A stretch of 64,000 nucleotides of DNA, taken from the sequence record NC_061443.1; one strand, given 5' to 3'. Below, in pieces: positions 1,758 through 30,483 of the stretch. The stretch's first letter is position 1, and each line of letters begins with the position of its first letter. Both the position numbers and the translations under genes were made by a program. The notes beneath the pieces are model-generated. The model had not been told where the DNA came from. It searched no databases and saw only the letters and a program-made list of their open reading frames with translations.

Positions 1758-2541
1758 CTTCGAAGGGCCGTACGGACTCGTCGAGTCTGACCAGATGATC
1801 CCACGCTGGTCGTACCCTGTTAAGCATGGACAGGTACGTAGAGTCGAAGCGTGGGAACTCGATACCTTGCCGAACGCAACGCAGCAAGTGCGAATGGTAA
1901 ATGACATTCACGCAATTCATAACACACCTGTAGAGGATTATGATGACGCACTCGATCTCGATGAAGAAGCCGCAACGATCTCAAAAACTGAGTCCCGACT
2001 TCTTATCAAGCCTCGACTCGATGAAGTCCGTGCCCGTAAAAACAAAGACCACCTTAGTCCAGAGAACGTCTTCTCCGTCACCGACGAAGTAATTGATGGT
2101 GCTCTGGATAGCATTGATGCTTACTCTGAAACGTTCCGTGATTACCTAATGCACCATGTGTTCAGCCCTATACTCGGGTTTGACATTGCAGCAGGTGAGG
2201 TCGAAGCAATCGCCAAAGACTGTCTCAAGACGGACTTAGAGATTGACAGCGAGCTTGTGCCGTATATCGAGCGCGTAGGGCTTGCTAACGTTCTCGGCGT
2301 AATGCTATCGAAGTCTAACTCTGTGCCTGAATCAGTACGCGCTGACGTGCTGAAAGACTGGCTGATTAAAGCGTTCGATGATGTACGCGCAGAGCATAAG
2401 CTGAAAGGTAACAGCTTGCGTGAACAAATACGCAGACTAATGCACGGTAACAATGATCTCGTAGCTAAAGGACCTGGTATAGGTACGACGCGCGGGTTCT
2501 CTGATTATAGGAAACAGATGACCGAGAATGGCCAAGCCTAA
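1750..2541 (+). CDS. hypothetical protein, possible terminase small subunit by position
   Basis: helical ORF overlapping the start of the large terminase; start (GTG 1750 or ATG 1795) uncertain; function from synteny only. Confidence 0.4.
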   Translation: MSNFEGPYGLVESDQMIPRWSYPVKHGQVRRVEAWELDTLPNATQQVRMVNDIHAIHNTPVEDYDDALDLDEEAATISKTESRLLIKPRLDEVRARKNKDHLSPENVFSVTDEVIDGALDSIDAYSETFRDYLMHHVFSPILGFDIAAGEVEAIAKDCLKTDLEIDSELVPYIERVGLANVLGVMLSKSNSVPESVRADVLKDWLIKAFDDVRAEHKLKGNSLREQIRRLMHGNNDLVAKGPGIGTTRGFSDYRKQMTENGQA

Positions 2542-5362
2542 GAAGGGCCCAGCTTTTACCTTGCGTCCAAAACGCATTGCAGCATTCGATGCGCTGCTTG
2601 GCGATGACGTAAAGGTAGAGGCTTCTTCTGACATGGACTTCTTGTCGGATAATAGTTCGAGTGCGATTAACTTCTTGGAGAAGGGCGAGGTAAACATCGT
2701 TGACTTGGTTGAAGGTGCGTTAGAACAACGTACCATCGTACCACGCGATTTGAAGTTCGATGACAGTTCAATGCCCAAGGCGAAAAACTTCCTTGAGTGG
2801 TGTACGAGTCCCGACTTCTTAAAAGCCGAGCCGTATCTTGAACAGGCCTTGATTGGTCTACGCTTGTTTGGAGAGATCTGCGTTCGCTGCTCTCCTGATT
2901 TGCAATGGCAGTACACTGAAAACCACGAGCCGCAAGAGACTACAGCCGCAATCGAGGAGCATCTGCACTTGTTGCATAACGGTGTGTGTCCTCATTGCGG
3001 CGCTCGTCGTTCTGAGATGATTCGCAAGAAAGAGATGAACTTCTATAACGAGCTGGCAGTGAATGCCGGACAGCGTTGTGTGATTGCTTCAACTCCTGTC
3101 GCCACTTCTCGCGGTATCATGCCTATCGGTCATATGATGATAGGTCACGACACTCCTGGATTCCACAAGCCTCGTCGCAATTTCAATGCGCACAATGGTC
3201 GTGAGATCAAGAAGGTCAGTCAGGTGTACGTGTCGGACGAAAGCCCTACGAAAGTAGTGATGCTCGCAAACGGCATTTGGGTAGAAGCCACTGACGAGCA
3301 CCCGATTCGTACCGAACACGGATTCAAGAAAGCTGCCAAGATTCGTCCTGGTGATAGAATTGAAATTCGTCTTGGTACTAACACGTGGGGCAAGATTCAA
3401 CGTCCTGTCAGTATCTACGATGCAGGTCTGTCTACACGCGAAGATGCGTTGCGCTACATCTCTGATCGCTCTCTGCCTTTTGGCGAGAAGATGCAGCAAT
3501 ACGTGTCTAACGATGACGACGCTCTGCAAATGGTCTGGTCTATTTTGCTTAACGCAGGCTATATGCCTAGTGTGCTGCACGGACCTGGCGATAAGAGCAT
3601 CCTGTTCGACCTGACAAAAGAGCCAGAAGTGCGCTCGGCTCACATTGAAGTAACTGACGTCCGACCAGGTACGCCGCAAGTAACGTATGACCTCCAGATG
3701 GAAGGTCTGCCTCAGTTTGTGGCTAGTGGTATGATACACCACAACAGCGGTAAGTCCGTTGTAGTTGCGATGATATCTACCTATCTGACGCACAGGCTGC
3801 TTATGTCGCAGTCGCCTACTGGCATCCTGAGTATCGACAACACAACCGTACTACACGGCACGTTCGTTGCGCTCACCCAGAAGCAAGCGTCTGATACACT
3901 CTGGACACCTTACTTCAACTACATCATGGGTAGTCCTTGGTTCCAAGCATATCATGATTTGATTCGCAGACACGAGCGCCGCTACGGCATCGAAGTGATG
4001 AAGATTCGTGATACGTTCGTGCTGTATGGGCACAGGAACTTTGTTATCTACCCAGCAGGTCCCGATGGTCGTATTCTTCGTGGACGAACACGCGTACTGG
4101 CGGTGATCGATGAAGTGGCGTATTTCGACAACGACGCCCAATCCAAAAAGATCAAAGTCAGTGCTGGTGCTGTGTACGGAGCGCTCGACCGTTCACTTGC
4201 GACCGTGCGGGCGAAAGAACGAAGGCAGGTGGAGGCCGGCTACGACGAGGCATTCACGGGTTACTTCTGCAACATCAGTAGCCCGGTACACGCTCGTGAT
4301 AAGATTAACGAGCTGTTGCGTATGTCCGTCGGTAGTGAGAAGCTGTTAGGCATTCATGCTCCTACGTGGAAGATGAACCCTGACATGCCACGCGATTCAG
4401 AGTTCCTGTTAGAAGCGTTCAAGCGTGACCCTGTAGGTGCAGCGCGAGATTATGGCGCAGAGGCACCGTTGTCTGCTAACCCATTCATCACGCAGCCTAC
4501 ATTTATCGCAGATGCTATTCGTGAGAAGGGTCGTTCGATGTGTACCTATACGCATCACATCATTCGACACAAAGACGGCGAGCGCCAGCGCTATGGTGCT
4601 TTAGTCAAAGCGGCAACGACAACCAAAGCGTCTATCCTTGCGATTGATGCTGGCTTCTCGAATAACAGTTTTGCACTCGTAACAGGCTCACGAGGCGATG
4701 ACGGTATTATCAGTGTTGACTGTCTGGTGGAGATTGTTCCAAAGCCAGGTATCCCTCTGAACTATACCTTAATCTTCGATGAACTGCTTATCCCGCTATG
4801 TAAGGCCCGTAACGTTCGTGTAATGCTTGCCGACCAGTGGCAATCGCTCAAGTTGCTGCAAGATGCTAAACTGAAAGTGGACTCGATTGAAGAATCAGAT
4901 CAGTACAGCCTGAAATATCAGGATATGTGGACTGTGAAGACGATGTTCGAATCTACTCCAAGCCGCATCACACTGCCTCGCATGACGAACGCGAAGACGA
5001 TTATGGACACGCTGAAATACGACGGCGACGAATATCCTCAGTGCTTCGAGAACAAACCAACAGAGCACTTGATCATGCAGCTCCAGACCGTACAGGACAC
5101 TGGACGTAGCGTCATCAAGAACACAGGCGCAACAGATGACCTGTGGCGAGCAATGGCACTCATGGTCTATGGCTTCGAGTGTGGTGAGTATGACGAGTAT
5201 CTGATTAAAGCGCCAGAAGTATCAATCAACCGTGACCCGAATCGTTTAGGCCGCGTAGCGCATAGACTTAACTCAGGCTCAGCCAGTTCAACAGGCAGAC
5301 CTGCACTTAGTGGTGGCCGTGTTCTTGGTTCAGCACGTACTCGGATGATTGGCCGGAAGTAA
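2528..5362 (+). CDS. terL: terminase large subunit (intein-containing)
   Basis: after splicing Walker A GQR-SGKS; LRGRT and VIDEVAYF Walker B; NISSP; nuclease LAIDAG; N-terminal CxxC...CPHC. Confidence 0.92.
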   Translation: MAKPKKGPAFTLRPKRIAAFDALLGDDVKVEASSDMDFLSDNSSSAINFLEKGEVNIVDLVEGALEQRTIVPRDLKFDDSSMPKAKNFLEWCTSPDFLKAEPYLEQALIGLRLFGEICVRCSPDLQWQYTENHEPQETTAAIEEHLHLLHNGVCPHCGARRSEMIRKKEMNFYNELAVNAGQRCVIASTPVATSRGIMPIGHMMIGHDTPGFHKPRRNFNAHNGREIKKVSQVYVSDESPTKVVMLANGIWVEATDEHPIRTEHGFKKAAKIRPGDRIEIRLGTNTWGKIQRPVSIYDAGLSTREDALRYISDRSLPFGEKMQQYVSNDDDALQMVWSILLNAGYMPSVLHGPGDKSILFDLTKEPEVRSAHIEVTDVRPGTPQVTYDLQMEGLPQFVASGMIHHNSGKSVVVAMISTYLTHRLLMSQSPTGILSIDNTTVLHGTFVALTQKQASDTLWTPYFNYIMGSPWFQAYHDLIRRHERRYGIEVMKIRDTFVLYGHRNFVIYPAGPDGRILRGRTRVLAVIDEVAYFDNDAQSKKIKVSAGAVYGALDRSLATVRAKERRQVEAGYDEAFTGYFCNISSPVHARDKINELLRMSVGSEKLLGIHAPTWKMNPDMPRDSEFLLEAFKRDPVGAARDYGAEAPLSANPFITQPTFIADAIREKGRSMCTYTHHIIRHKDGERQRYGALVKAATTTKASILAIDAGFSNNSFALVTGSRGDDGIISVDCLVEIVPKPGIPLNYTLIFDELLIPLCKARNVRVMLADQWQSLKLLQDAKLKVDSIEESDQYSLKYQDMWTVKTMFESTPSRITLPRMTNAKTIMDTLKYDGDEYPQCFENKPTEHLIMQLQTVQDTGRSVIKNTGATDDLWRAMALMVYGFECGEYDEYLIKAPEVSINRDPNRLGRVAHRLNSGSASSTGRPALSGGRVLGSARTRMIGRK
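3077..3745 (+). mobile_element. intein (223 aa, reduced endonuclease region) in TerL Walker A
   Basis: starts CVIASTPV, block B ATDEHPI, ends YDLQM...IHHN followed by Ser. Confidence 0.9.
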
Positions 5363-12244: not shown

Positions 12245-13015
12245 ATGAGCAACGTTGATAAAACAATGCCACAAGGTCGCTGGGAATTTAACGAACCAGT
12301 TGCTGCTGTCTTCGATAACATGCTGCAAAATTCTATCCCCTCATACGAGCGTATGCGTGACCTGACCTATCGTCTGGGTCGTCAGTTCGTAACTCCAGGC
12401 ACAGCCATTGTTGACTTGGGTGCGTCACTTGGTCGTGCTATCGAACCGTTCTGTGCTGAGTTCGGCGAGTACATGTATCTTCACGCGGCAGATCGTCCTG
12501 AGCCAGATCGTGAAACAGGCAACCACTACTGCTGTTATGAAGTAGCGCCTGCGATGCTTGAGCGTCTGCGTCAAAATGAAGTGCTGGTCAATGCCAAAGC
12601 TAAAATCAGTAGCGAGTCACTGGTTGAAGTGGACACTTTCCGATTCGACGAGCAGGTTGAATGCTCTTTGATTCTGTCTGTGTTGACTCTCCAGTTCACA
12701 CCGATTGAACATCGCCAGCACATCCTTGAGAAGGTCTATGACAGTCTTGAGAAAGGTGGCGCGTTCATCCTCGTTGAGAAAGTGCTTGGCGACGATAACT
12801 TCCTCGACCGCCTGTTGGTTGATACCTACTACGGCATGAAAGGCAGCAACGGCTACTCGCAAGAATCTATTGCGACAAAACGTAAAGCGCTCGAAGGCGT
12901 ACTGGTTCCTGTGAAAGCCGCATGGAACGAAGAACTGTTGCGTAAAGCAGGCTTCAACCGTGTTGAGTGTTTCTATCGCGATCTGAACTTCGCTGGATGG
13001 ATTGCAGTTAAGTAA
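12245..13015 (+). CDS. cmoA: carboxy-S-adenosyl-L-methionine synthase-like SAM-dependent protein
   Basis: WEFNEPVAAVFDNMLQNSIPSY N-terminus, VDLGASLG SAM motif, LTLQF, LVEKV, KRKALEGV with the conserved CmoA Arg, FAGWIAVK C-terminus. Confidence 0.85.
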   Translation: MSNVDKTMPQGRWEFNEPVAAVFDNMLQNSIPSYERMRDLTYRLGRQFVTPGTAIVDLGASLGRAIEPFCAEFGEYMYLHAADRPEPDRETGNHYCCYEVAPAMLERLRQNEVLVNAKAKISSESLVEVDTFRFDEQVECSLILSVLTLQFTPIEHRQHILEKVYDSLEKGGAFILVEKVLGDDNFLDRLLVDTYYGMKGSNGYSQESIATKRKALEGVLVPVKAAWNEELLRKAGFNRVECFYRDLNFAGWIAVK

Positions 13016-13022
13016 CAAATGC

Positions 13023-13047
13023 GGGTGGCTTCGGCCGCCCCTTGTTG
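13023..13047 (+). terminator. hairpin with weak U tract (possible leaky terminator)
   Basis: GGGTGGC-TTCG-GCCGCCC-CTTGTTG between cmoA and next gene. Confidence 0.5.
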
Positions 13048-13062
13048 CACAGGAGATTAGCA

Positions 13063-13926
13063 ATGGCCAACAAACGCCAAGAACGTTGTGCGTCAATGAT
13101 TCGTGAGTCGTTGATTACCGAAATCAAGAAAGCACGTTCTAAACAACCCTACGTCTTCCTCAGTGGCGGCGTAGACTCAAACTGTATTCTGTTTGCTGCG
13201 CTTGAGGCAGGGTGCCGTCCAATTACCCTTTCATTCCACATGGAAGGCGTTAATAGTCGTGACTTCCGAGCGGCTCAGGCGATAGCAAAAGAGTTTGACC
13301 TTGAGCTGATTGAGGTTGTGCTGCCGAACTCTTATGAGAAACTCAAATCGGATGTGCTGCTTATGGCTGAACGTTATAAGTGTGTGCAGAAAAATGAGTT
13401 CGAATGTTCGTGGCCTATGCTCTATAGCTTCTTCCACGTTCGCAACCATGCGCGTGAGAACGGCATCAAGAACCCTGTGACCTTTACTGGCCAAGGCGCT
13501 GACTTGATGTACCTGTCTTCTAAGAAGGCTAGCATTCACTATAAAGATCGTCCTGATGTGTGGCGTAAAGAAGGTCGCGCTAATCCGCATCGTACTCAAG
13601 GACGCATCCTGCCTCTCATGGCTCGTGATGCGGGCATTCGTAATATTAAGCCTTGGGACAGTGAGGAAATTCTTCAAGCGTTTCTCGGCACGTCATGGGA
13701 AGACGTTAACAAGCCACGACAGAAAGAACCTTCTCGTGCCGCATTCGAAGATTACTTCAAACGCGTTCGAGTATTCAACCATCAGAACTTCCAGCTCGGT
13801 GATACAGGTATCGCAGAGCATTTCGAAAAGCTGTTGGCGGATTCTGAAATGAATCCAGACTTCAAATATAAAAGTGTTGTCGGCGTCTACGGAGAGCTGG
13901 CTCGCGCATACCAGGAAAAATCCTGA
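13063..13926 (+). CDS. asparagine-synthetase-like ATP-dependent amide ligase (no glutaminase domain)
   Basis: PP-loop FLSGGVDS, FTGQGAD (cf. AsnB SGEGADE), KEPSRAAF (cf. K..LR.AF); only 287 aa. Confidence 0.8.
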   Translation: MANKRQERCASMIRESLITEIKKARSKQPYVFLSGGVDSNCILFAALEAGCRPITLSFHMEGVNSRDFRAAQAIAKEFDLELIEVVLPNSYEKLKSDVLLMAERYKCVQKNEFECSWPMLYSFFHVRNHARENGIKNPVTFTGQGADLMYLSSKKASIHYKDRPDVWRKEGRANPHRTQGRILPLMARDAGIRNIKPWDSEEILQAFLGTSWEDVNKPRQKEPSRAAFEDYFKRVRVFNHQNFQLGDTGIAEHFEKLLADSEMNPDFKYKSVVGVYGELARAYQEKS

Positions 13927-16711: not shown

Positions 16712-17554
16712 ATGACAGTAATAAGTCCAATCCGTTATCAGGGCAATAAGCGTAGCCTTATTCCTTTTATTCTCGAACATGTGCCTGACGTGAAAGACTG
16801 TCCGCGCATGGTCGATGTGTTTGGTGGTAGCGCTACTGTCTGTGCGAATATGCCGCAGAAGTTTCGCGTCTACAACGAACTAAGTCCTCAGGTGTATGAG
16901 ATCGTTAAGATGCTTGTCGAGCAGGACCCGAAGAAAACATTGGGTCAAGTCAAGCGTCTGGTACGCCACTGGTGTCTGACGAACAGCAACGAAGAAAACT
17001 ACGATGCGTTCCGTACAGTCCTCCAGAAGAAGCGCACTGCAATCTTGCATTACGTTGCACATCGTCACGCACACTCGAACATGTTGCGCTTCAACCAACA
17101 GGGTGTGTACAACGTAGGCTTTGGTGATCGTGGTCTGATTGGTAAGTTCGATGAACTCGAACACGAACTCACCTCATTCCACCAGCACATGCAAGGCGTC
17201 CACCTGACGAACATGAAGTATGGTAAATTGCTTGGTCGTCTCGGCAATCAACTGGACTGCAACACGTTCTGCTACTTCGACCCGCCTTATCTGGCGAGTG
17301 GTGCAATGCAGTACGGCAAGTGGACCGAAGCCAATGAGCGCAATCTGCTGGCGACGCTTGAGCAACTCAATCGCTTGGGCGTACCGTGGATGTTGAGCAA
17401 TGTTATCGAACACCGAGAGTTCTCGAACGATCTGTTGAAGCGCTGGTTAAAGAAACACGCGACGACCGTGCTCTACCCAAACAAAAGCTATGCGATGAAC
17501 AACGGCCAGAGTGGCTCGCATAGTACGATTGAAATTCTGGCGATGAACTATTGA
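16712..17554 (+). CDS. dam: DNA adenine methyltransferase (D12/Dam class)
   Basis: RYQGNK, DVFGGSATV, FDPPY, WMLSN. Confidence 0.92.
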   Translation: MTVISPIRYQGNKRSLIPFILEHVPDVKDCPRMVDVFGGSATVCANMPQKFRVYNELSPQVYEIVKMLVEQDPKKTLGQVKRLVRHWCLTNSNEENYDAFRTVLQKKRTAILHYVAHRHAHSNMLRFNQQGVYNVGFGDRGLIGKFDELEHELTSFHQHMQGVHLTNMKYGKLLGRLGNQLDCNTFCYFDPPYLASGAMQYGKWTEANERNLLATLEQLNRLGVPWMLSNVIEHREFSNDLLKRWLKKHATTVLYPNKSYAMNNGQSGSHSTIEILAMNY

Positions 17555-19039: not shown

Positions 19040-19427
19040 AGCATCTGACGCGGAAGCACGGGCGTACTTTCAGAAACAACACGAACGTGCCGAAGCCACT
19101 ATGCGAGAAATTTGGGCGTTGCGTGGCTGGACGATTCGCTGGGAATGGCACAACGGAATCTGCGATGACTGTGAGTTCCTGTTCGATGAAACAGGCAAAC
19201 AGTTGTGCCCTTATCACGATGCCATTCCTCAAGAACGTGATGTATCGTACAACCTTGAGAAGTATCGCCTCAATGTAACGTACACCAAGAAATCTGTAAA
19301 ATTGATTAACAAGCAAGATCCCAATCCAGTTGAAGGTAAAGCCGACACGTTACGTCAGGCATATCTCAATTGGTTACTTGCGATTGAAAAGCAGAAAGCT
19401 GAGGAGAAAACGTGCGCTGCGACCTGA
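19017..19427 (+). CDS. possible second ABA-sandwich-like protein
   Basis: CAGGAG RBS; LEKYRLNV...EGKADTLRQAYL parallels preceding gene. Confidence 0.45.
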   Translation: MYLPLGDKASDAEARAYFQKQHERAEATMREIWALRGWTIRWEWHNGICDDCEFLFDETGKQLCPYHDAIPQERDVSYNLEKYRLNVTYTKKSVKLINKQDPNPVEGKADTLRQAYLNWLLAIEKQKAEEKTCAAT

Positions 19428-19933
19428 AAGACCTTCCACTGGCATTAGATCAAGCTGAACACATCCTGGCGAGCGTGTTCACTCTGGCTGCTTCCTCCAA
19501 GTCTAAGCGTCGTGCGACTGCTGCGATGTTGGTGCATTTCCACAATGGCTTCCCGATGATTCTGAGTAGTGGTGTCAACGGGACAACGCCTGGCGAAAGC
19601 AATGTGATGGAAACTCCTGACTTGACGCTTTCGCTGGACACTGTGATTCATGCAGAAGTGAATTGCTTGGACCGTCTCGAAGACTACTCACTCTGGGCAG
19701 ACTTCCGTGACGTCCTGTTCTGTACAGATTCACCGTGCCCCAACTGTCTGACCGAGCTTACTACTGCTGGCGTGAAGACCGTTGTGTATGCGCGTGAGTA
19801 TCGCCTGACTGATCATCTGGACGCATCTGATATCAAGATGTTCTGTCTGGACATGAAGTCGGTTGAGCATCGTATGCTTCGCGGCATCGAGCGTATGAAC
19901 GAAGTTATCGCAACAACGCCAGCGTCTGAATAA
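19412..19933 (+). CDS. dCMP deaminase
   Basis: SSGVNGTTPG, HAE, SPCPNC zinc motif, VVYAREY. Confidence 0.88.
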   Translation: MRCDLKDLPLALDQAEHILASVFTLAASSKSKRRATAAMLVHFHNGFPMILSSGVNGTTPGESNVMETPDLTLSLDTVIHAEVNCLDRLEDYSLWADFRDVLFCTDSPCPNCLTELTTAGVKTVVYAREYRLTDHLDASDIKMFCLDMKSVEHRMLRGIERMNEVIATTPASE

Positions 19934-24284: not shown

Positions 24285-24588
24285 TCTGCTGGTAAAGATG
24301 TTCGGCCAGAACAAGCCGTTCTTTGTAGTACGTCGGGACGCGATTGTTGAAGAAGGAAAGCGTTTCGGTGATCGTGTCTACTTCTCCAACGGCACTAACA
24401 CTGTTACCGTGCCAAACATTCAGGGGCTCGACCTCGGTGATAAGCTCTACATTGCAGAAGACGGCGATGTGTATGAGTGGCATCCTCACTTCGAGCGCCC
24501 GTACGAAGCAGTATCAAACAACCAGTCAGAAGCTCTGGCGTTTGGTCTGCATCCCATTGTTTTTCATACTGACAGTCGGAACAGCTAA
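24244..24588 (+). CDS. hypothetical protein
   Basis: coupled to thymidylate synthase. Confidence 0.5.
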   Translation: MPTPLILLKQQTRDLLVKMFGQNKPFFVVRRDAIVEEGKRFGDRVYFSNGTNTVTVPNIQGLDLGDKLYIAEDGDVYEWHPHFERPYEAVSNNQSEALAFGLHPIVFHTDSRNS

Positions 24589-25685
24589 TGTCACAACCAC
24601 TTGATCTACGCAATCCAAATCACTACGAACTGTACTCTATTCACAACGTGGACGAACAGTACATCAACCTGTGTGACGCTATTATCGCTACAGGCACGAA
24701 AGAGTCTGACCCTGAGCGCACCACCGACGAGTGGTTGACTATCATCGGTGTCGGCTTCCAGTTGCAGAACACGCACATCGCTTTCCCTGCGCTGCTTGGT
24801 GCACGTAAGAACTGGGTAGCGGCTGTCGATGAAATGTGTTGGATGGCTCGCGGTGAAACGAACATCGAATCCCTGAACTCTAAGATCTGGGATTTGTGGG
24901 CAGACGAATCTGGAGACTGCGGTCCTATCTACGGTGAGCAGTGGCGCCGTTGGCCTGACGTCAAAGCCTTCTTCGACTACACGCAGCCTATGGCATCTTG
25001 CCCTACTGCGGAAGTTATTCGTGCGCGTAATGAAATCCTGCGTATGCGTGAAGACGGCTACATCGAAACTGAACTGACTGATGGTCGCATTCTGTTTGAA
25101 GGTCAGATTGACCAGTTCGTTAATGCTCTGTACCAGATTCAGGCTCGCTCCCGTTCGCGCCGCATCCGTGTTCAGGCGTTCAACCCAAGCTATGTGAACA
25201 TGCAGGGTCTGCCTCCATGCCACACTGAGTTTGAGTTCAACGTAACGAAAGCTACTCGCTACGAACAAGCTCAGGCAGAAGCGCGTGGACAAGCTGTTGC
25301 CGAAGACAGCCTGCACATCACTGTCCAACTCCGTTCCAATGATTGTCTACTCGGACGCCCGTTCAACATCATGGGCTACAGCGCCATGCACCAGATGATC
25401 GCTAAGTGGGCGGGTCTAAACGTCGGCGGCTTCACGCTCAACTCTACCAACACGCATATGTATACGCACCACATCGAAGCGTATCAGACGCAACGTGCCC
25501 AGTGGATGACGCTACGCGAGCGTATGCAGAAAACGGGTGAGCCTGTTAAATACCCTGTGCTCGAAATCAGTGACGACATTCTTGGCCTGACGCCAGAGCA
25601 GTTGCTCGATAACGCGAACGCAGATTGGTTCGAGCTGGTGGACTACAATCCAATGCCAGCAGTAAAAGGACGTGTGACCAAATGA
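24588..25685 (+). CDS. thyA: thymidylate synthase (ThyA type)
   Basis: EMCWMARG, IWDLWAD..GDCGPIYGEQWR, SRRI, LPPCH, QLRSND.LLGRPFN, HMYTHH. Confidence 0.93.
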   Translation: MSQPLDLRNPNHYELYSIHNVDEQYINLCDAIIATGTKESDPERTTDEWLTIIGVGFQLQNTHIAFPALLGARKNWVAAVDEMCWMARGETNIESLNSKIWDLWADESGDCGPIYGEQWRRWPDVKAFFDYTQPMASCPTAEVIRARNEILRMREDGYIETELTDGRILFEGQIDQFVNALYQIQARSRSRRIRVQAFNPSYVNMQGLPPCHTEFEFNVTKATRYEQAQAEARGQAVAEDSLHITVQLRSNDCLLGRPFNIMGYSAMHQMIAKWAGLNVGGFTLNSTNTHMYTHHIEAYQTQRAQWMTLRERMQKTGEPVKYPVLEISDDILGLTPEQLLDNANADWFELVDYNPMPAVKGRVTK

Positions 25686-27650: not shown

Positions 27651-28352
27651 ATGGCAAAAATTGCTAAAACAAAGGAAGGGAAAAAGAGCCACGCGATGAA
27701 GATTGACTTGACGAAATTCAAGACAGCTTCACAACTGAAAGGCGCTGACTATAACCCACGCTTCATTACAGATAGCCGACTTAAAGCACTCGAAAGTTCT
27801 TTGGGTAGCTTCGGCGATTTGTCTGGTATCGTGTTCAACAACAGCGTGAAGTCTGGCGTTCTTGTCTCTGGCCACCAGCGTTTGAAATCCATTGACGGGT
27901 GGAAGACGCGTATTGAAATTCAGAAGACGACTGATAAGTACGGCACTATCGGTCTGGGCTACATCCACGCAACGCATCCGAAGAAGCCTGAGAAGGTTAT
28001 CAGTATCCCGCTTCGTATCGTTAACTGGACGGACAAGAAAACCGAGTATGCTGCGAACATCGCGGCGAACGCTCATGGCGGTGAGTTCGATAACAAGAAA
28101 CTCGCCAAGCTGGTTGAGAAGCTGGACTTGACAACTATCAAGCCACAGTTGCTTGGCCTTGACCCGTTAGAAATTCGTGGGCTGCAACAAAAGCTGAAAG
28201 GTCAGGCTGCCGTTGTCACTCAAGAGCGAGCAGGTAAGACTACAGGCCAGATGAACGGCAGTAGTGGTTCGTTCAAAGAGTACGGCACTGACGAAGTTGG
28301 TGAGAGCCTGAACTGCACCTGCCCGCGTTGTGGATTTAAGTTCGAGGGATAA
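27651..28352 (+). CDS. ParB/sulfiredoxin-like domain protein with C-terminal zinc ribbon
   Basis: DYNPR, FGDLSGIVFN, VSGHQRLK, ANIAANAHGGEFD, CTCPRCGFKF. Confidence 0.8.
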   Translation: MAKIAKTKEGKKSHAMKIDLTKFKTASQLKGADYNPRFITDSRLKALESSLGSFGDLSGIVFNNSVKSGVLVSGHQRLKSIDGWKTRIEIQKTTDKYGTIGLGYIHATHPKKPEKVISIPLRIVNWTDKKTEYAANIAANAHGGEFDNKKLAKLVEKLDLTTIKPQLLGLDPLEIRGLQQKLKGQAAVVTQERAGKTTGQMNGSSGSFKEYGTDEVGESLNCTCPRCGFKFEG

Positions 28353-28353
28353 T

Positions 28354-30483
28354 ATGATCATCAAGCCGCCTACGATGAAGGAAATCAACAAGCTGGATAA
28401 ACCCTGGCGTGGTATGAGTTTCTTCGCAGGTTGCGGTGGGTCTTCTACCGGCCACAAGATGGCCGGTATCAACATCCTGTTGAGTAACGAGTTCGTGGAC
28501 TCTGCCCGCGAATCCTATGAAGCGAATCACCCAACCACAAAAGTGCTGCCGCATGATATTCGTCGTCTGGACCCAAGCAAGCTCATGCGTTATTGCGGGC
28601 TGGCAAAAGGCGAACTGGATTTACTTGACGGCAGTCCTCCATGCTTTACCGAAGACACCATCATTCATACAGCAGACGGCATGAAGTTCATCTCGGACAT
28701 GAATGTCGGCGATCAAGCAATGACCTCAGTCGGTCGTTACTTCCCTGTGTACGATACAATGGTTCGTCCATACGTCGGCACAATGCACAAAGTCGAAACG
28801 CTGTTGGGCGCAAATAACGCAACGCCTGAGCATCCATTCTTCGTAAGACGTAACACTGCTCCTGGTGAGTACGGCGAACCGTTCTGGTGTGATGCGAAAG
28901 ACGTGCAGGAAGGTGATCTGGTCGGTACTCCACGCACGACTCCTGATATGGGTCTTGCTGTGTACGAAGACCAGCTGGCTCAACTGCCTAAGCAGATCGC
29001 CGAGTGGGTAGTGTTCCCTGAGTTCTGGTGGATGATTGGTCACTGGTGCGACCGTGGTTCGATTGAAACTGTTAGCGGCGTTGAAGTCGTTAGCTTTGAA
29101 TCTCATTCCAGCCTTGAGAACGCAATGATTGAGCAGTCGTTTGACGCGCTTAAAATCAGTAGCCTGAATCGTATCGACACAAAGACAGCACAACGCAAAA
29201 CGTTCCGTATCGTTATGGACGCAGAGCTGGTGCAGTTCTTACGTCGCTTCGTGTCTCAAGGTAACAATCGTTTCTCTCGCCGTCTGCCTGCAATGATCTT
29301 TCACTTGTCGCCTGAGTTGAAGCAACAATTCATCTTAGGCTGCGCTGGTCATGACTACGTGACTGCGATGGGCGCTAGTCTGTCTATCACATCAGAGAGC
29401 CGTCGCTTCCTGATTGAGATGAACTACCTGTGCTGTTCAGCGTTCAACAGACCTCTGTTTGACGGACTGATTTGGGGCGACGTTTACTTCGGTAGCTCCA
29501 TGACTCCTCGTGAGCGCAACAGTGCCAAGCCTCTTATTGGCTATTTGTTCCTGCAGGACGAGCCGCATTACTTCTTCGAGTTCTCTGATACTGATCCTCA
29601 CATCTGGGTTGAAGTAATTGAGAACCTCGCGTATCAGGCAACCTGTGACGTGTACAACTTCTCCGTTGAGACGGACGAGACATACGTTGCAAACAGCGTG
29701 GTCGTTCACAACTGCAAAGGTTTCTCTACTGCTGGTGTGAAGGAAGAAGGCTGGGGCAAAGAGGTGAAGTACAGCGACAACAAGTATCAGCAGGTAGATG
29801 ACCTGTTCGATCAGTATTGTCGTATGCTGGGCGGGATGCAGCCGAAAGTGTTCACTGCGGAAAACGTTAGCGGCCTCGTTAAAGGTGCGTCGAAAGGCTA
29901 CTTCCTTGAAATCATGAAGGAGTTCGACAAGCTGGGCTACTACGTCCGGGCGCCAATGCTTAATGCTGCGTGGCTTGGTGTGCCTCAGTCTCGTGAGCGT
30001 ATCATCTTTATGGGTGTACGCAAAGACGTTGCCCATGCGCTTGGATATAAGACGGCTGCTACTGCTGTGCCTGACGTTGTACCGTGTGACAGCATGGCGT
30101 TTCTTGCCGATGCTCTGCCGAACATCCTGCGTTACAAATCAACGAAGAAAGATATCATCACGTATCTTCCTGCGATGAACGGTCCGATGCCTACGATTAC
30201 TGCCGCCGATGCGATTGCATACGAGACTGCGCGTTTCTCGTCTGCTGGCTTCGTCGAAGATAACAAAGGTCATCGACGCAAGCTGACTATTGATGAACTC
30301 AAAGTTATCTCTGGGCTGCCGTCAGACTACAAACTGAAAGGCAAGTTCGAAGAACAGTGGGAACGTCTTGGTCGTATCTGTGTGCCTGCAATGACACACG
30401 CTGCGGCTAAAGCGTTAATCGAACACGTCCTGATTCCTTATGCGAAGAAGCGTAAGAAGAAGCCTGGCGATATCTTTAAGTAA
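28354..30483 (+). CDS. C5-cytosine methyltransferase homologue, predicted DNA carboxymethyltransferase, intein-containing
   Basis: motif I FFAGCGGSS, motif IV GSPP-C, VI ENVSGL, VIII QSRERI, IX RKLTIDE, motif X WERLGRICVP (Arg for canonical Asn). Confidence 0.85.
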   Translation: MIIKPPTMKEINKLDKPWRGMSFFAGCGGSSTGHKMAGINILLSNEFVDSARESYEANHPTTKVLPHDIRRLDPSKLMRYCGLAKGELDLLDGSPPCFTEDTIIHTADGMKFISDMNVGDQAMTSVGRYFPVYDTMVRPYVGTMHKVETLLGANNATPEHPFFVRRNTAPGEYGEPFWCDAKDVQEGDLVGTPRTTPDMGLAVYEDQLAQLPKQIAEWVVFPEFWWMIGHWCDRGSIETVSGVEVVSFESHSSLENAMIEQSFDALKISSLNRIDTKTAQRKTFRIVMDAELVQFLRRFVSQGNNRFSRRLPAMIFHLSPELKQQFILGCAGHDYVTAMGASLSITSESRRFLIEMNYLCCSAFNRPLFDGLIWGDVYFGSSMTPRERNSAKPLIGYLFLQDEPHYFFEFSDTDPHIWVEVIENLAYQATCDVYNFSVETDETYVANSVVVHNCKGFSTAGVKEEGWGKEVKYSDNKYQQVDDLFDQYCRMLGGMQPKVFTAENVSGLVKGASKGYFLEIMKEFDKLGYYVRAPMLNAAWLGVPQSRERIIFMGVRKDVAHALGYKTAATAVPDVVPCDSMAFLADALPNILRYKSTKKDIITYLPAMNGPMPTITAADAIAYETARFSSAGFVEDNKGHRRKLTIDELKVISGLPSDYKLKGKFEEQWERLGRICVPAMTHAAAKALIEHVLIPYAKKRKKKPGDIFK
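28642..29712 (+). mobile_element. intein (357 aa) with degenerate LAGLIDADG endonuclease
   Basis: starts CFTEDT, block B ATPEHPF, ends VYNFSVETDETYVANSVVVHN followed by Cys; endonuclease helices read MIGHWCDRGS and FILGCAGHD. Confidence 0.92.

Follow-up and report, generated by a model that had tools for sequence, protein, structure and literature searches.

The window analysed here is the first 64,000 nt of pEa_SNUABM_2 (nt 1-64000 of NC_061443/MZ443786; window and record coordinates coincide), an Alexandravirus jumbo phage of 265,442 bp that infects Erwinia amylovora. In it lies gp045, a gene whose 709-amino acid (aa) precursor consists of a cytosine-C5 DNA methylase, with an arginine in place of the canonical motif X asparagine, and of an intein inserted in motif IV, precisely at the border of SPP and the catalytic Cys; the predicted spliced product has 352 aa. 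The open frame around the gene runs 28330/28354-30483. A ParB-like gene, gp044, precedes it, and about 15 kb upstream stand homologs of CmoA (gp016), which synthesises carboxy-S-adenosyl-L-methionine (Cx-SAM), and of the ligase CmoY (gp017). The arginine, the catalytic motifs, the splicing residues of the intein and the CmoA, CmoY and ParB homologs are read directly from the sequence, and their positions are collected in Table 1.

Table 1. Features of the gp045 locus, partner genes and other genes of the window mentioned in the text
Feature	Position (nt)	Strand	Content or basis
Predicted CmoX-type DNA cytosine C5-carboxymethyltransferase precursor gene, gp045	28354-30483	+	ORF (open reading frame); RefSeq CDS (coding sequence) MPK66_gp045; PF00145
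N-extein, aa 1-96	28354-28641	+	motif I FFAGCGGSS at ~28420-28446; NEF, D68; end ...LLDGSPP
LAGLIDADG-type intein, 357 aa	28642-29712	+	Cys1 (CFTEDT...), block B NATPEHPF, end ...VVVHN
C-extein, 256 aa	29713-30480	+	opens with +1 Cys = motif IV catalytic Cys (SPP|CKGFS); ENV at 29860-29868, QSRER, target-recognition region, motif X
Motif X WERLGRICVP	30358-30387	+	Arg codon CGT at 30373-30375
CmoA homolog gp016 (carboxy-SAM synthase)	12245-13015	+	TIGR00740, 4GEK and SpCmoA matches; RefSeq 'tRNA methyltransferase'
CmoY-like ATP-dependent amide ligase gp017	13063-13926	+	PF00733; SpCmoY match; phrog_26038
ParB-like gp044	27651-28352	+	phrog_620 'ParB-like partition protein', E 2.5e-31
gp024, Dam-family N6-adenine methyltransferase	16712-17554
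gp029, dCMP deaminase	19412-19933
gp040, thymidylate-synthase homolog	24588-25685		365 aa, ~100 aa over the Pfam model (aa 23-363 vs 266-position profile)
gp004, terminase large subunit	2528-5362		944 aa
Insert in gp004	about 3077-3745		~223 aa; CVIAS...MIHHN|S; weak Pfam Intein_splicing match, aa 226-406

On the plus strand, window positions 30352-30387 read GAACAGTGGGAACGTCTTGGTCGTATCTGTGTGCCT, translated EQWERLGRICVP. An earlier note on this DNA had read motif X here as WERLGRICVP, with Arg for the canonical Asn, and both the translation and a HMMER alignment agree with it. The codon specifies Arg317 (numbered on the spliced protein; Arg674 in the precursor), equivalent to Asn304 of M.HhaI, Asn374 of M.MpeI and Arg350 of the phage enzyme SpCmoX (PDB 8YF3). 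In the HMMER alignment, werLGR of gp045 stands opposite ykmIGN of M.HaeIII, rqVGN of DNMT1 and terVGR of 8YF3, the last ending on R350, and Arg317 and R350 sit in an ungapped ER.GR block. The arginine is invariant in five fully aligned relatives from different phage genera, and conserved to at least 90% when the protein is aligned with 21 proteins from the database, of which 19 are intein-bearing relatives. Of the 120 best database homologs, 115 have it and five have GN[SA]VPP instead. Judged by these alignments, it is neither a chance nor a strain-specific substitution. Motif IV SPPC, C97, E146-N-V, R190 and R192 are invariant in 121 of 121 sequences, and ENV and QxRxR are intact in gp045. 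F24, E46, F47 and D68, which match F25, E47, F48 and D69 of SpCmoX, are conserved in 119-121 of the 121. Several CmoX homologs of 483-534 aa (P0088, P0091, P0100, P0111 and P0119) have ~100-160 aa extra in the target-recognition region, between the catalytic core and motifs IX-X.

The spliced protein matches the Pfam family C-5 cytosine DNA methylase (PF00145, E 1.1e-44; in the precursor, Intein_splicing and Hint_2 segments are also seen), and gp045 is matched over its full length by phrog_36001 in PHROGs. The best PDB sequence match of the spliced protein is 8YF3 (E 1.1e-59), an entry titled 'DNA cytosine C5-carboxymethyltransferase in complex with Cx-SAM'. An AlphaFold2 (AF2) model of it (predicted local distance difference test score, pLDDT, 92.1; predicted template-modelling score, pTM, 0.91) has the same entry as its top Foldseek match (E 2.3e-27; template-modelling (TM) scores 0.71/0.75), and M.HaeIII and M.HhaI rank after it (TM 0.66-0.70). 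The earlier note had expected a routine annotation to call the gene Dcm; the orthologs in Y3, AD1 and Yoloswag are indeed labelled 'DNA-cytosine methyltransferase' or 'modification methylase NgoFVII', but gp045 itself is a 'hypothetical protein' in both GenBank and RefSeq.

Yang et al. (Nat Commun, December 2025, PMC12783734) describe the enzyme in 8YF3, SpCmoX, which comes from Synechococcus phage S-B43. SpCmoX forms 5-carboxymethylcytosine (5cxmC) at GpC sites from Cx-SAM, the sole cofactor that the wild type accepts, and in E. coli its activity and its 5cxmC product require cmoA, for which the host CmoA suffices (PMC12783734). Its Arg350, in place of M.HhaI Asn304, touches the Cx-SAM carboxylate, and the R350N mutant is dead with S-adenosylmethionine (SAM) and Cx-SAM alike, with no switch to SAM (PMC12783734). 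In S-B43, the phage CmoA makes Cx-SAM and the Asn-synthase-like CmoY ligates glycine onto 5cxmC; the virions contained the ligated base only, and 5cxmC was not found in them (PMC12783734). The CmoX family, with 5,615 candidates, is defined by SPPC plus R350; genes for CmoA, for an AMP-forming ligase and for a ParBc protein are frequent neighbours, the latter two not obligatory (PMC12783734). No Erwinia phage, intein or jumbo phage is named in the text or supplements of that paper.

As far as sequence can tell, gp045 has both of the published sequence features of the family, SPPC and Arg at the R350 position, together with its gene context. It has the fold of SpCmoX, the same SPPC (S95-C98 in SpCmoX), ENV, QxRxR and motif X Gly-Arg, and 36-39% identity to it over the full length, and the residues for the adenine and ribose contacts (F25, E47, F48 and D69 in SpCmoX) are conserved. 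It differs in being split at SPP|C by a 357-aa intein. We conclude that gp045 is an intein-interrupted CmoX and not a new kind of enzyme. With a probability of roughly 85%, it is an ortholog-grade member of the family, predicted to be a Cx-SAM-dependent DNA cytosine C5-carboxymethyltransferase. The proposal of the earlier note that the gene specifies a natural DNA carboxymethyltransferase is thereby supported, by the 8YF3 match, the alignment of the arginine with R350, SPPC, the predicted cofactor contacts and the CmoA, CmoY and ParB context. Because the CmoX family was published in December 2025, the principle of carboxymethylation is not itself new.

The partner genes bear on the same point. 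gp016 matches the TIGR00740 model of CmoA (E 7.8e-43), E. coli CmoA (4GEK) over its full length (E 6e-31) and the characterised SpCmoA with 30% identity (E 2e-29), and its Y3 ortholog is labelled carboxy-S-adenosyl-L-methionine synthase in GenBank. A role of gp016 in serving phage tRNAs was considered and rejected, there being no tRNA genes in the 64-kb window. Immediately downstream lies gp017, of the Asn-synthase/PP-loop type, with an SGGVDS motif and without a glutaminase domain (current label 'asparagine synthase'). It matches PF00733 at 36.6 bits (cut-off 21) and shares 34% identity (E 8e-37) with SpCmoY, which has been characterised; a sequence comparison with the PDB gave no match for it. 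Thus, like S-B43, pEa_SNUABM_2 has both a CmoA and an Asn-synthase-like ligase, but in S-B43 they form one operon with CmoX, whereas gp045 is paired with a ParB-like gene. That gene, gp044, ends one base ahead of the CmoX start; its assignment as ParB-like comes from PHROGs only, with no Pfam match even at E<=5. The ParB-CmoX pair is found also in Alexandra, Y3, Yoloswag, fHe-Yen9-02 and three metagenomic contigs (L008-L010), and two intein-less homologs lie, like gp045, behind a ParB-like gene. On the L008-L010 contigs, which carry the closest intein-less homologs, no CmoA or CmoY lies within 10 kb. S-B43 differs further in its host; that of pEa_SNUABM_2 is an enterobacterial plant pathogen, which has a cmoA of its own.

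Genes for a Dam-family N6-adenine methyltransferase (gp024), a dCMP deaminase (gp029) and an enlarged thymidylate-synthase homolog (gp040) lie between the CmoA/CmoY pair and CmoX. The order Dam, deaminase, ThyA, ParB, CmoX recurs on metagenomic contig L008. In a 2018 comparison of related 'hairy' jumbo phages, a ParB-like 'repressor', a cytosine methyltransferase, an Asn synthase and a methyltransferase were listed, without interpretation, as common to AD1 and Y3 (PMC6143709). The table of that paper also gives a radical SAM superfamily protein (AD1_267/Y3_272) as common to the two; no annotated counterpart was seen in pEa_SNUABM_2 between 225 and 265 kb.

The occurrence of CmoX and CmoA was counted by tblastn in GenBank phages, CmoA matches being scored at E<=1e-10; counts are of records, and those for the clade include duplicate RefSeq/GenBank entries. 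Homologs of each were found in 48 Erwinia-phage records, 2 Dickeya-phage records, Yersinia phage fHe-Yen9-02, 6 Synechococcus phage records and Streptomyces phage TurkishDelight. Nine GenBank phage enzymes were compared (that of pEa_SNUABM_2 and eight homologs): of the five with Arg, four are accompanied by a phage CmoA, which is the case for no enzyme with another residue (Asn, Asn, Met, Leu). The five close homologs of Asn type were left out of this comparison, their contigs being 3-6 kb long and CmoA lying 15 kb off in the present phage.

Several of these phages deserve individual mention. In TurkishDelight (L014:2317-7345), two ParB genes are followed by an Arg-type CmoX (423 aa), a ligase with a glutamine-amidotransferase domain (466 aa) and CmoA; the ligase is the ammonia-type variant named in the CmoX paper, here in an actinophage. 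Moraxella phage Mcat8 (L003:4926-5996), a temperate-type phage of 40 kb from a human respiratory bacterium, has the closest intein-less GenBank phage homolog, an Arg-type CmoX of 43% (MAFFT) or 41% (tblastn) identity. Mcat8 gave no match to gp016 in the GenBank-phage search at E<=1e-10, which implies that its enzyme would rely on host Cx-SAM. The SPPC-type homologs of Flavobacterium phage FPSV-S2 (L011:1423-2490) and Methylophilales phage Melnitz (L013:1396-2613) have Met (IGMSVPP) and Leu (IGLMVAP), respectively, at the motif X position. By their sequence, these residues are of neither the methyl type nor the carboxymethyl type, and neither phage had a match to gp016 in the GenBank-phage search.

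Several observations weigh against the assignment of gp045 and its partners to this pathway. The 146.9 bits of gp016 are below the curated NCBIfam CmoA cut-off of 193.3, and gp016 and gp017 lie ~15 kb from CmoX, unlike the adjacent genes of S-B43. At only 34% identity to SpCmoY, gp017 need not join the same amine. The target-recognition regions of gp045 and SpCmoX do not align, and for that reason the GpC specificity cannot be transferred to gp045. A basic motif X residue is by itself compatible with SAM use, as the behaviour of engineered enzymes indicates. Finally, our literature searches turned up no description of DNA modification in Alexandravirus or in phages like Y3. For gp045, the cofactor that it uses, its splicing, its product and target motif and its role in the phage are all inferred.

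One alternative is that gp045 is an ordinary SAM-dependent C5 methyltransferase, such as a Dcm-like anti-restriction methylase, in which the arginine is a tolerated variant of motif X. The protein does match PF00145 and has canonical motifs I, IV, VI and VIII, its relatives are named 'DNA (cytosine-5-)-methyltransferase' in databases, and five close homologs have the canonical Asn. M.HhaI, M.HaeIII and Dcm share with it the catalytic scaffold and the covalent Cys-C6 mechanism, but they have motif X Gly-Asn, use SAM, lack CmoA and ligase partners and are only ~20% identical to it. The laboratory mutants M.MpeI N374K and M.MedI N377K are nearer in one respect, in that a basic residue replaces the motif X Asn, pairs with the Cx-SAM carboxylate and yields 5cxmC. 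The M.MpeI background given in the earlier note is borne out by published work (PMC13288465, PMC12015181). However, the residue in these mutants is Lys and not Arg, the parent enzymes are CpG methylases, the similarity of the M.MpeI structures to gp045 is distant (E about 1e-6), and SAM methylation is kept, a property that would favour the alternative. Against it stand the exclusive use of Cx-SAM by the nearest characterised relative, in which Arg touches the carboxylate, the invariance of the Arg in the five aligned relatives and its near invariance in database relatives, and the co-occurrence of CmoA and ligase genes. We therefore regard an ordinary methyltransferase as very unlikely. The same facts limit a further claim of the earlier note, that this single residue is diagnostic: SpCmoX cannot do without its Arg, yet the claim is too strong, since R350N kills the enzyme without converting it, Asn-to-Lys enzymes keep SAM, and the family is defined by SPPC, Arg and context together.

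A second possibility accepts that gp045 uses Cx-SAM but assigns the phage CmoA and ligase to other roles, such as tRNA 5-carboxymethoxyuridine (cmo5U), depletion of SAM as a counter to defences, or a small-molecule pathway, so that the DNA would contain plain 5cxmC made from host Cx-SAM. The 15 kb between CmoA/CmoY and CmoX would fit such a division, as would the Arg-type enzyme of Mcat8 with no gp016 match at E<=1e-10. In addition, host CmoA is enough for SpCmoX in E. coli, and SAM depletion is raised as a possible side role in the CmoX paper (PMC12783734). On the other hand, CmoA adjoins the ligase (12245-13926) as in the S-B43 operon, gp017 is a clear SpCmoY homolog, tRNA genes are absent from the window, and the virions of S-B43 held only the ligated base and not 5cxmC. 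This account is the less parsimonious one when compared with a CmoA-CmoX-CmoY pathway acting on the phage DNA, and we give it a slim chance.

The intein separates ...GSPP from CKGFSTAG..., and its excision yields GSPPCKGFSTAG, a C5-methyltransferase motif IV with its catalytic Cys. The words 'spliced protein' in the earlier note indicate that the intein had been recognised there. The intein-less metagenomic homologs P0001-P0005 (64-71% identity) read GSPPCKGFSTAG or near variants across the junction, the spliced 352-aa protein is colinear through it with SpCmoX and the Moraxella phage homolog (MAFFT), and in all relatives the C-extein appears as a separate tblastn match from residue 97. None of the relatives departs from C1, T61-P-E-H64, H356-N357 or the +1 Cys. 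The AF2 model of the intein (pLDDT 83.5, pTM 0.82) matches, in Foldseek, first TliVMA (7qsu, E 9e-14) and then PI-SceI and PI-PfuI, with 10-14% identity to any solved intein. It shares with PI-SceI/VMA, TliVMA and PI-PfuI a Hint domain with an inserted LAGLIDADG fold, the Cys1, TxxH and HN + Cys residues, and insertion inside a catalytic motif of the host protein. It differs from them in that it is found in CmoX genes only and in that its acidic LAGLIDADG residues are not conserved. The Pfam Intein_splicing model scores 31.7 bits (cut-off 35.8), the other Pfam intein models are also under their cut-offs, and a PDB sequence search gave one marginal match only. In our literature searches, no phage cytosine methyltransferase was described as carrying an intein.

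The related jumbo phages of Erwinia, Dickeya and Yersinia all have the intein, and its family was found in only 20 protein clusters (its own included), all of them CmoX proteins of 699-711 aa and, where contigs are long enough, from ~260-kb phages. In the Yoloswag and Yersinia phage relatives, the intein is 36-40% identical and the exteins ~76%, so that the intein diverges about twice as fast as the exteins. The LAGLIDADG-like helices read IGHWCDRGS and ILGCAGHDY here and CAHGT, VSNGT or VANGS in relatives, and the lack of conservation at the acidic positions points to decay of the endonuclease part and makes homing activity doubtful. We consider that the intein has probably been inherited vertically, with predicted splicing maintained while the endonuclease decays; decay of the endonuclease leaves the splicing of an intein unimpaired. 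Inteins of other sizes occupy the same SPP|C site in Arg-type metagenomic homologs, one of 257 aa in P0006 (602 aa) and a mini-intein of 171 aa in P0019 (506 aa). Because three size classes share the exact site, SPP|C is a recurrent intein target. In the terminase large subunit gp004 of the same window, the Walker A loop (AGQR|SGKS) is interrupted by an insert that would be a second intein; terminase inteins in related jumbo phages are mentioned in the PaBG paper.

That gp045 is instead a disrupted relic, inactivated by an insertion that no longer splices or whose precursor is the final product, is very unlikely. In its favour, the insertion parts SPP from the catalytic Cys, the Pfam intein models stay under their gathering cut-offs, and the acidic LAGLIDADG residues vary among relatives, so that the endonuclease may be decaying. 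Against it, no relative examined has a break in the reading frame of its intein-bearing gene, and each of the 19 database relatives with the intein has its full length of 699-711 aa. There is no variation in Cys1, in the block B Thr and His, in the His-Asn at the end of the intein or in the +1 Cys, and in the most distant relatives the exteins have kept 76% identity against 36-40% for the intein, as for a selected host protein.

For an active, intein-interrupted CmoX, we infer the following course of events by analogy with SpCmoX and S-B43. The 709-aa precursor would shed the 357-aa intein and join ...GSPP to CKGFS..., which would complete motif IV and turn the +1 Cys of the intein into the catalytic nucleophile (Cys97). 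The phage CmoA, gp016, would convert SAM and prephenate to Cx-SAM, and host CmoA could add to the supply. CmoX would then flip the target cytosine out, Cys97 would attack C6, and the C5 carbanion would take the carboxymethyl group of Cx-SAM, its carboxylate held by Arg317, to give 5cxmC. The ligase gp017 would adenylate the 5cxmC carboxylate and join to it an amine (glycine in S-B43), and the hypermodified base may shield the phage genome against host nucleases. A bolder extension, which we hold to be doubtful, is that the DNA of the jumbo phages of Erwinia, Dickeya and Yersinia contains a new 5cxmC-derived base, with a non-glycine amide and a non-GpC target. As part of the same idea, the intein on the catalytic Cys, with Cys1 and Cys+1 adjacent, might make carboxymethylation of the genome conditional, for instance on redox state or timing.

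Compared with the literature searched, two things are new: the full CmoA, CmoX, CmoY and ParB set in Erwinia, Dickeya and Yersinia jumbo phages, and an intein at the catalytic Cys of a CmoX. The latter is a textbook case of active-site insertion. The assignments correct the annotation of this gene set, whose members now bear the label 'hypothetical protein', 'tRNA methyltransferase' or 'asparagine synthase'. The clade concerned comprises about 50 genome records of fire-blight jumbo phages, some of which have been used in biocontrol cocktails. They predict that the DNA of these phages is carboxymethylated and probably amidated further; if this is true, restriction mapping and nanopore basecalling would be affected by the modification, as would the host range of the phages and their resistance to host defences. 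The toolbox of 5cxmC-based sequencing would gain a natural enzyme of the Arg type, probably of different sequence specificity, and the CmoA-CmoX-CmoY pathway described in 2025 would extend from cyanophages to cultivable enterobacterial phages with genetically tractable hosts.

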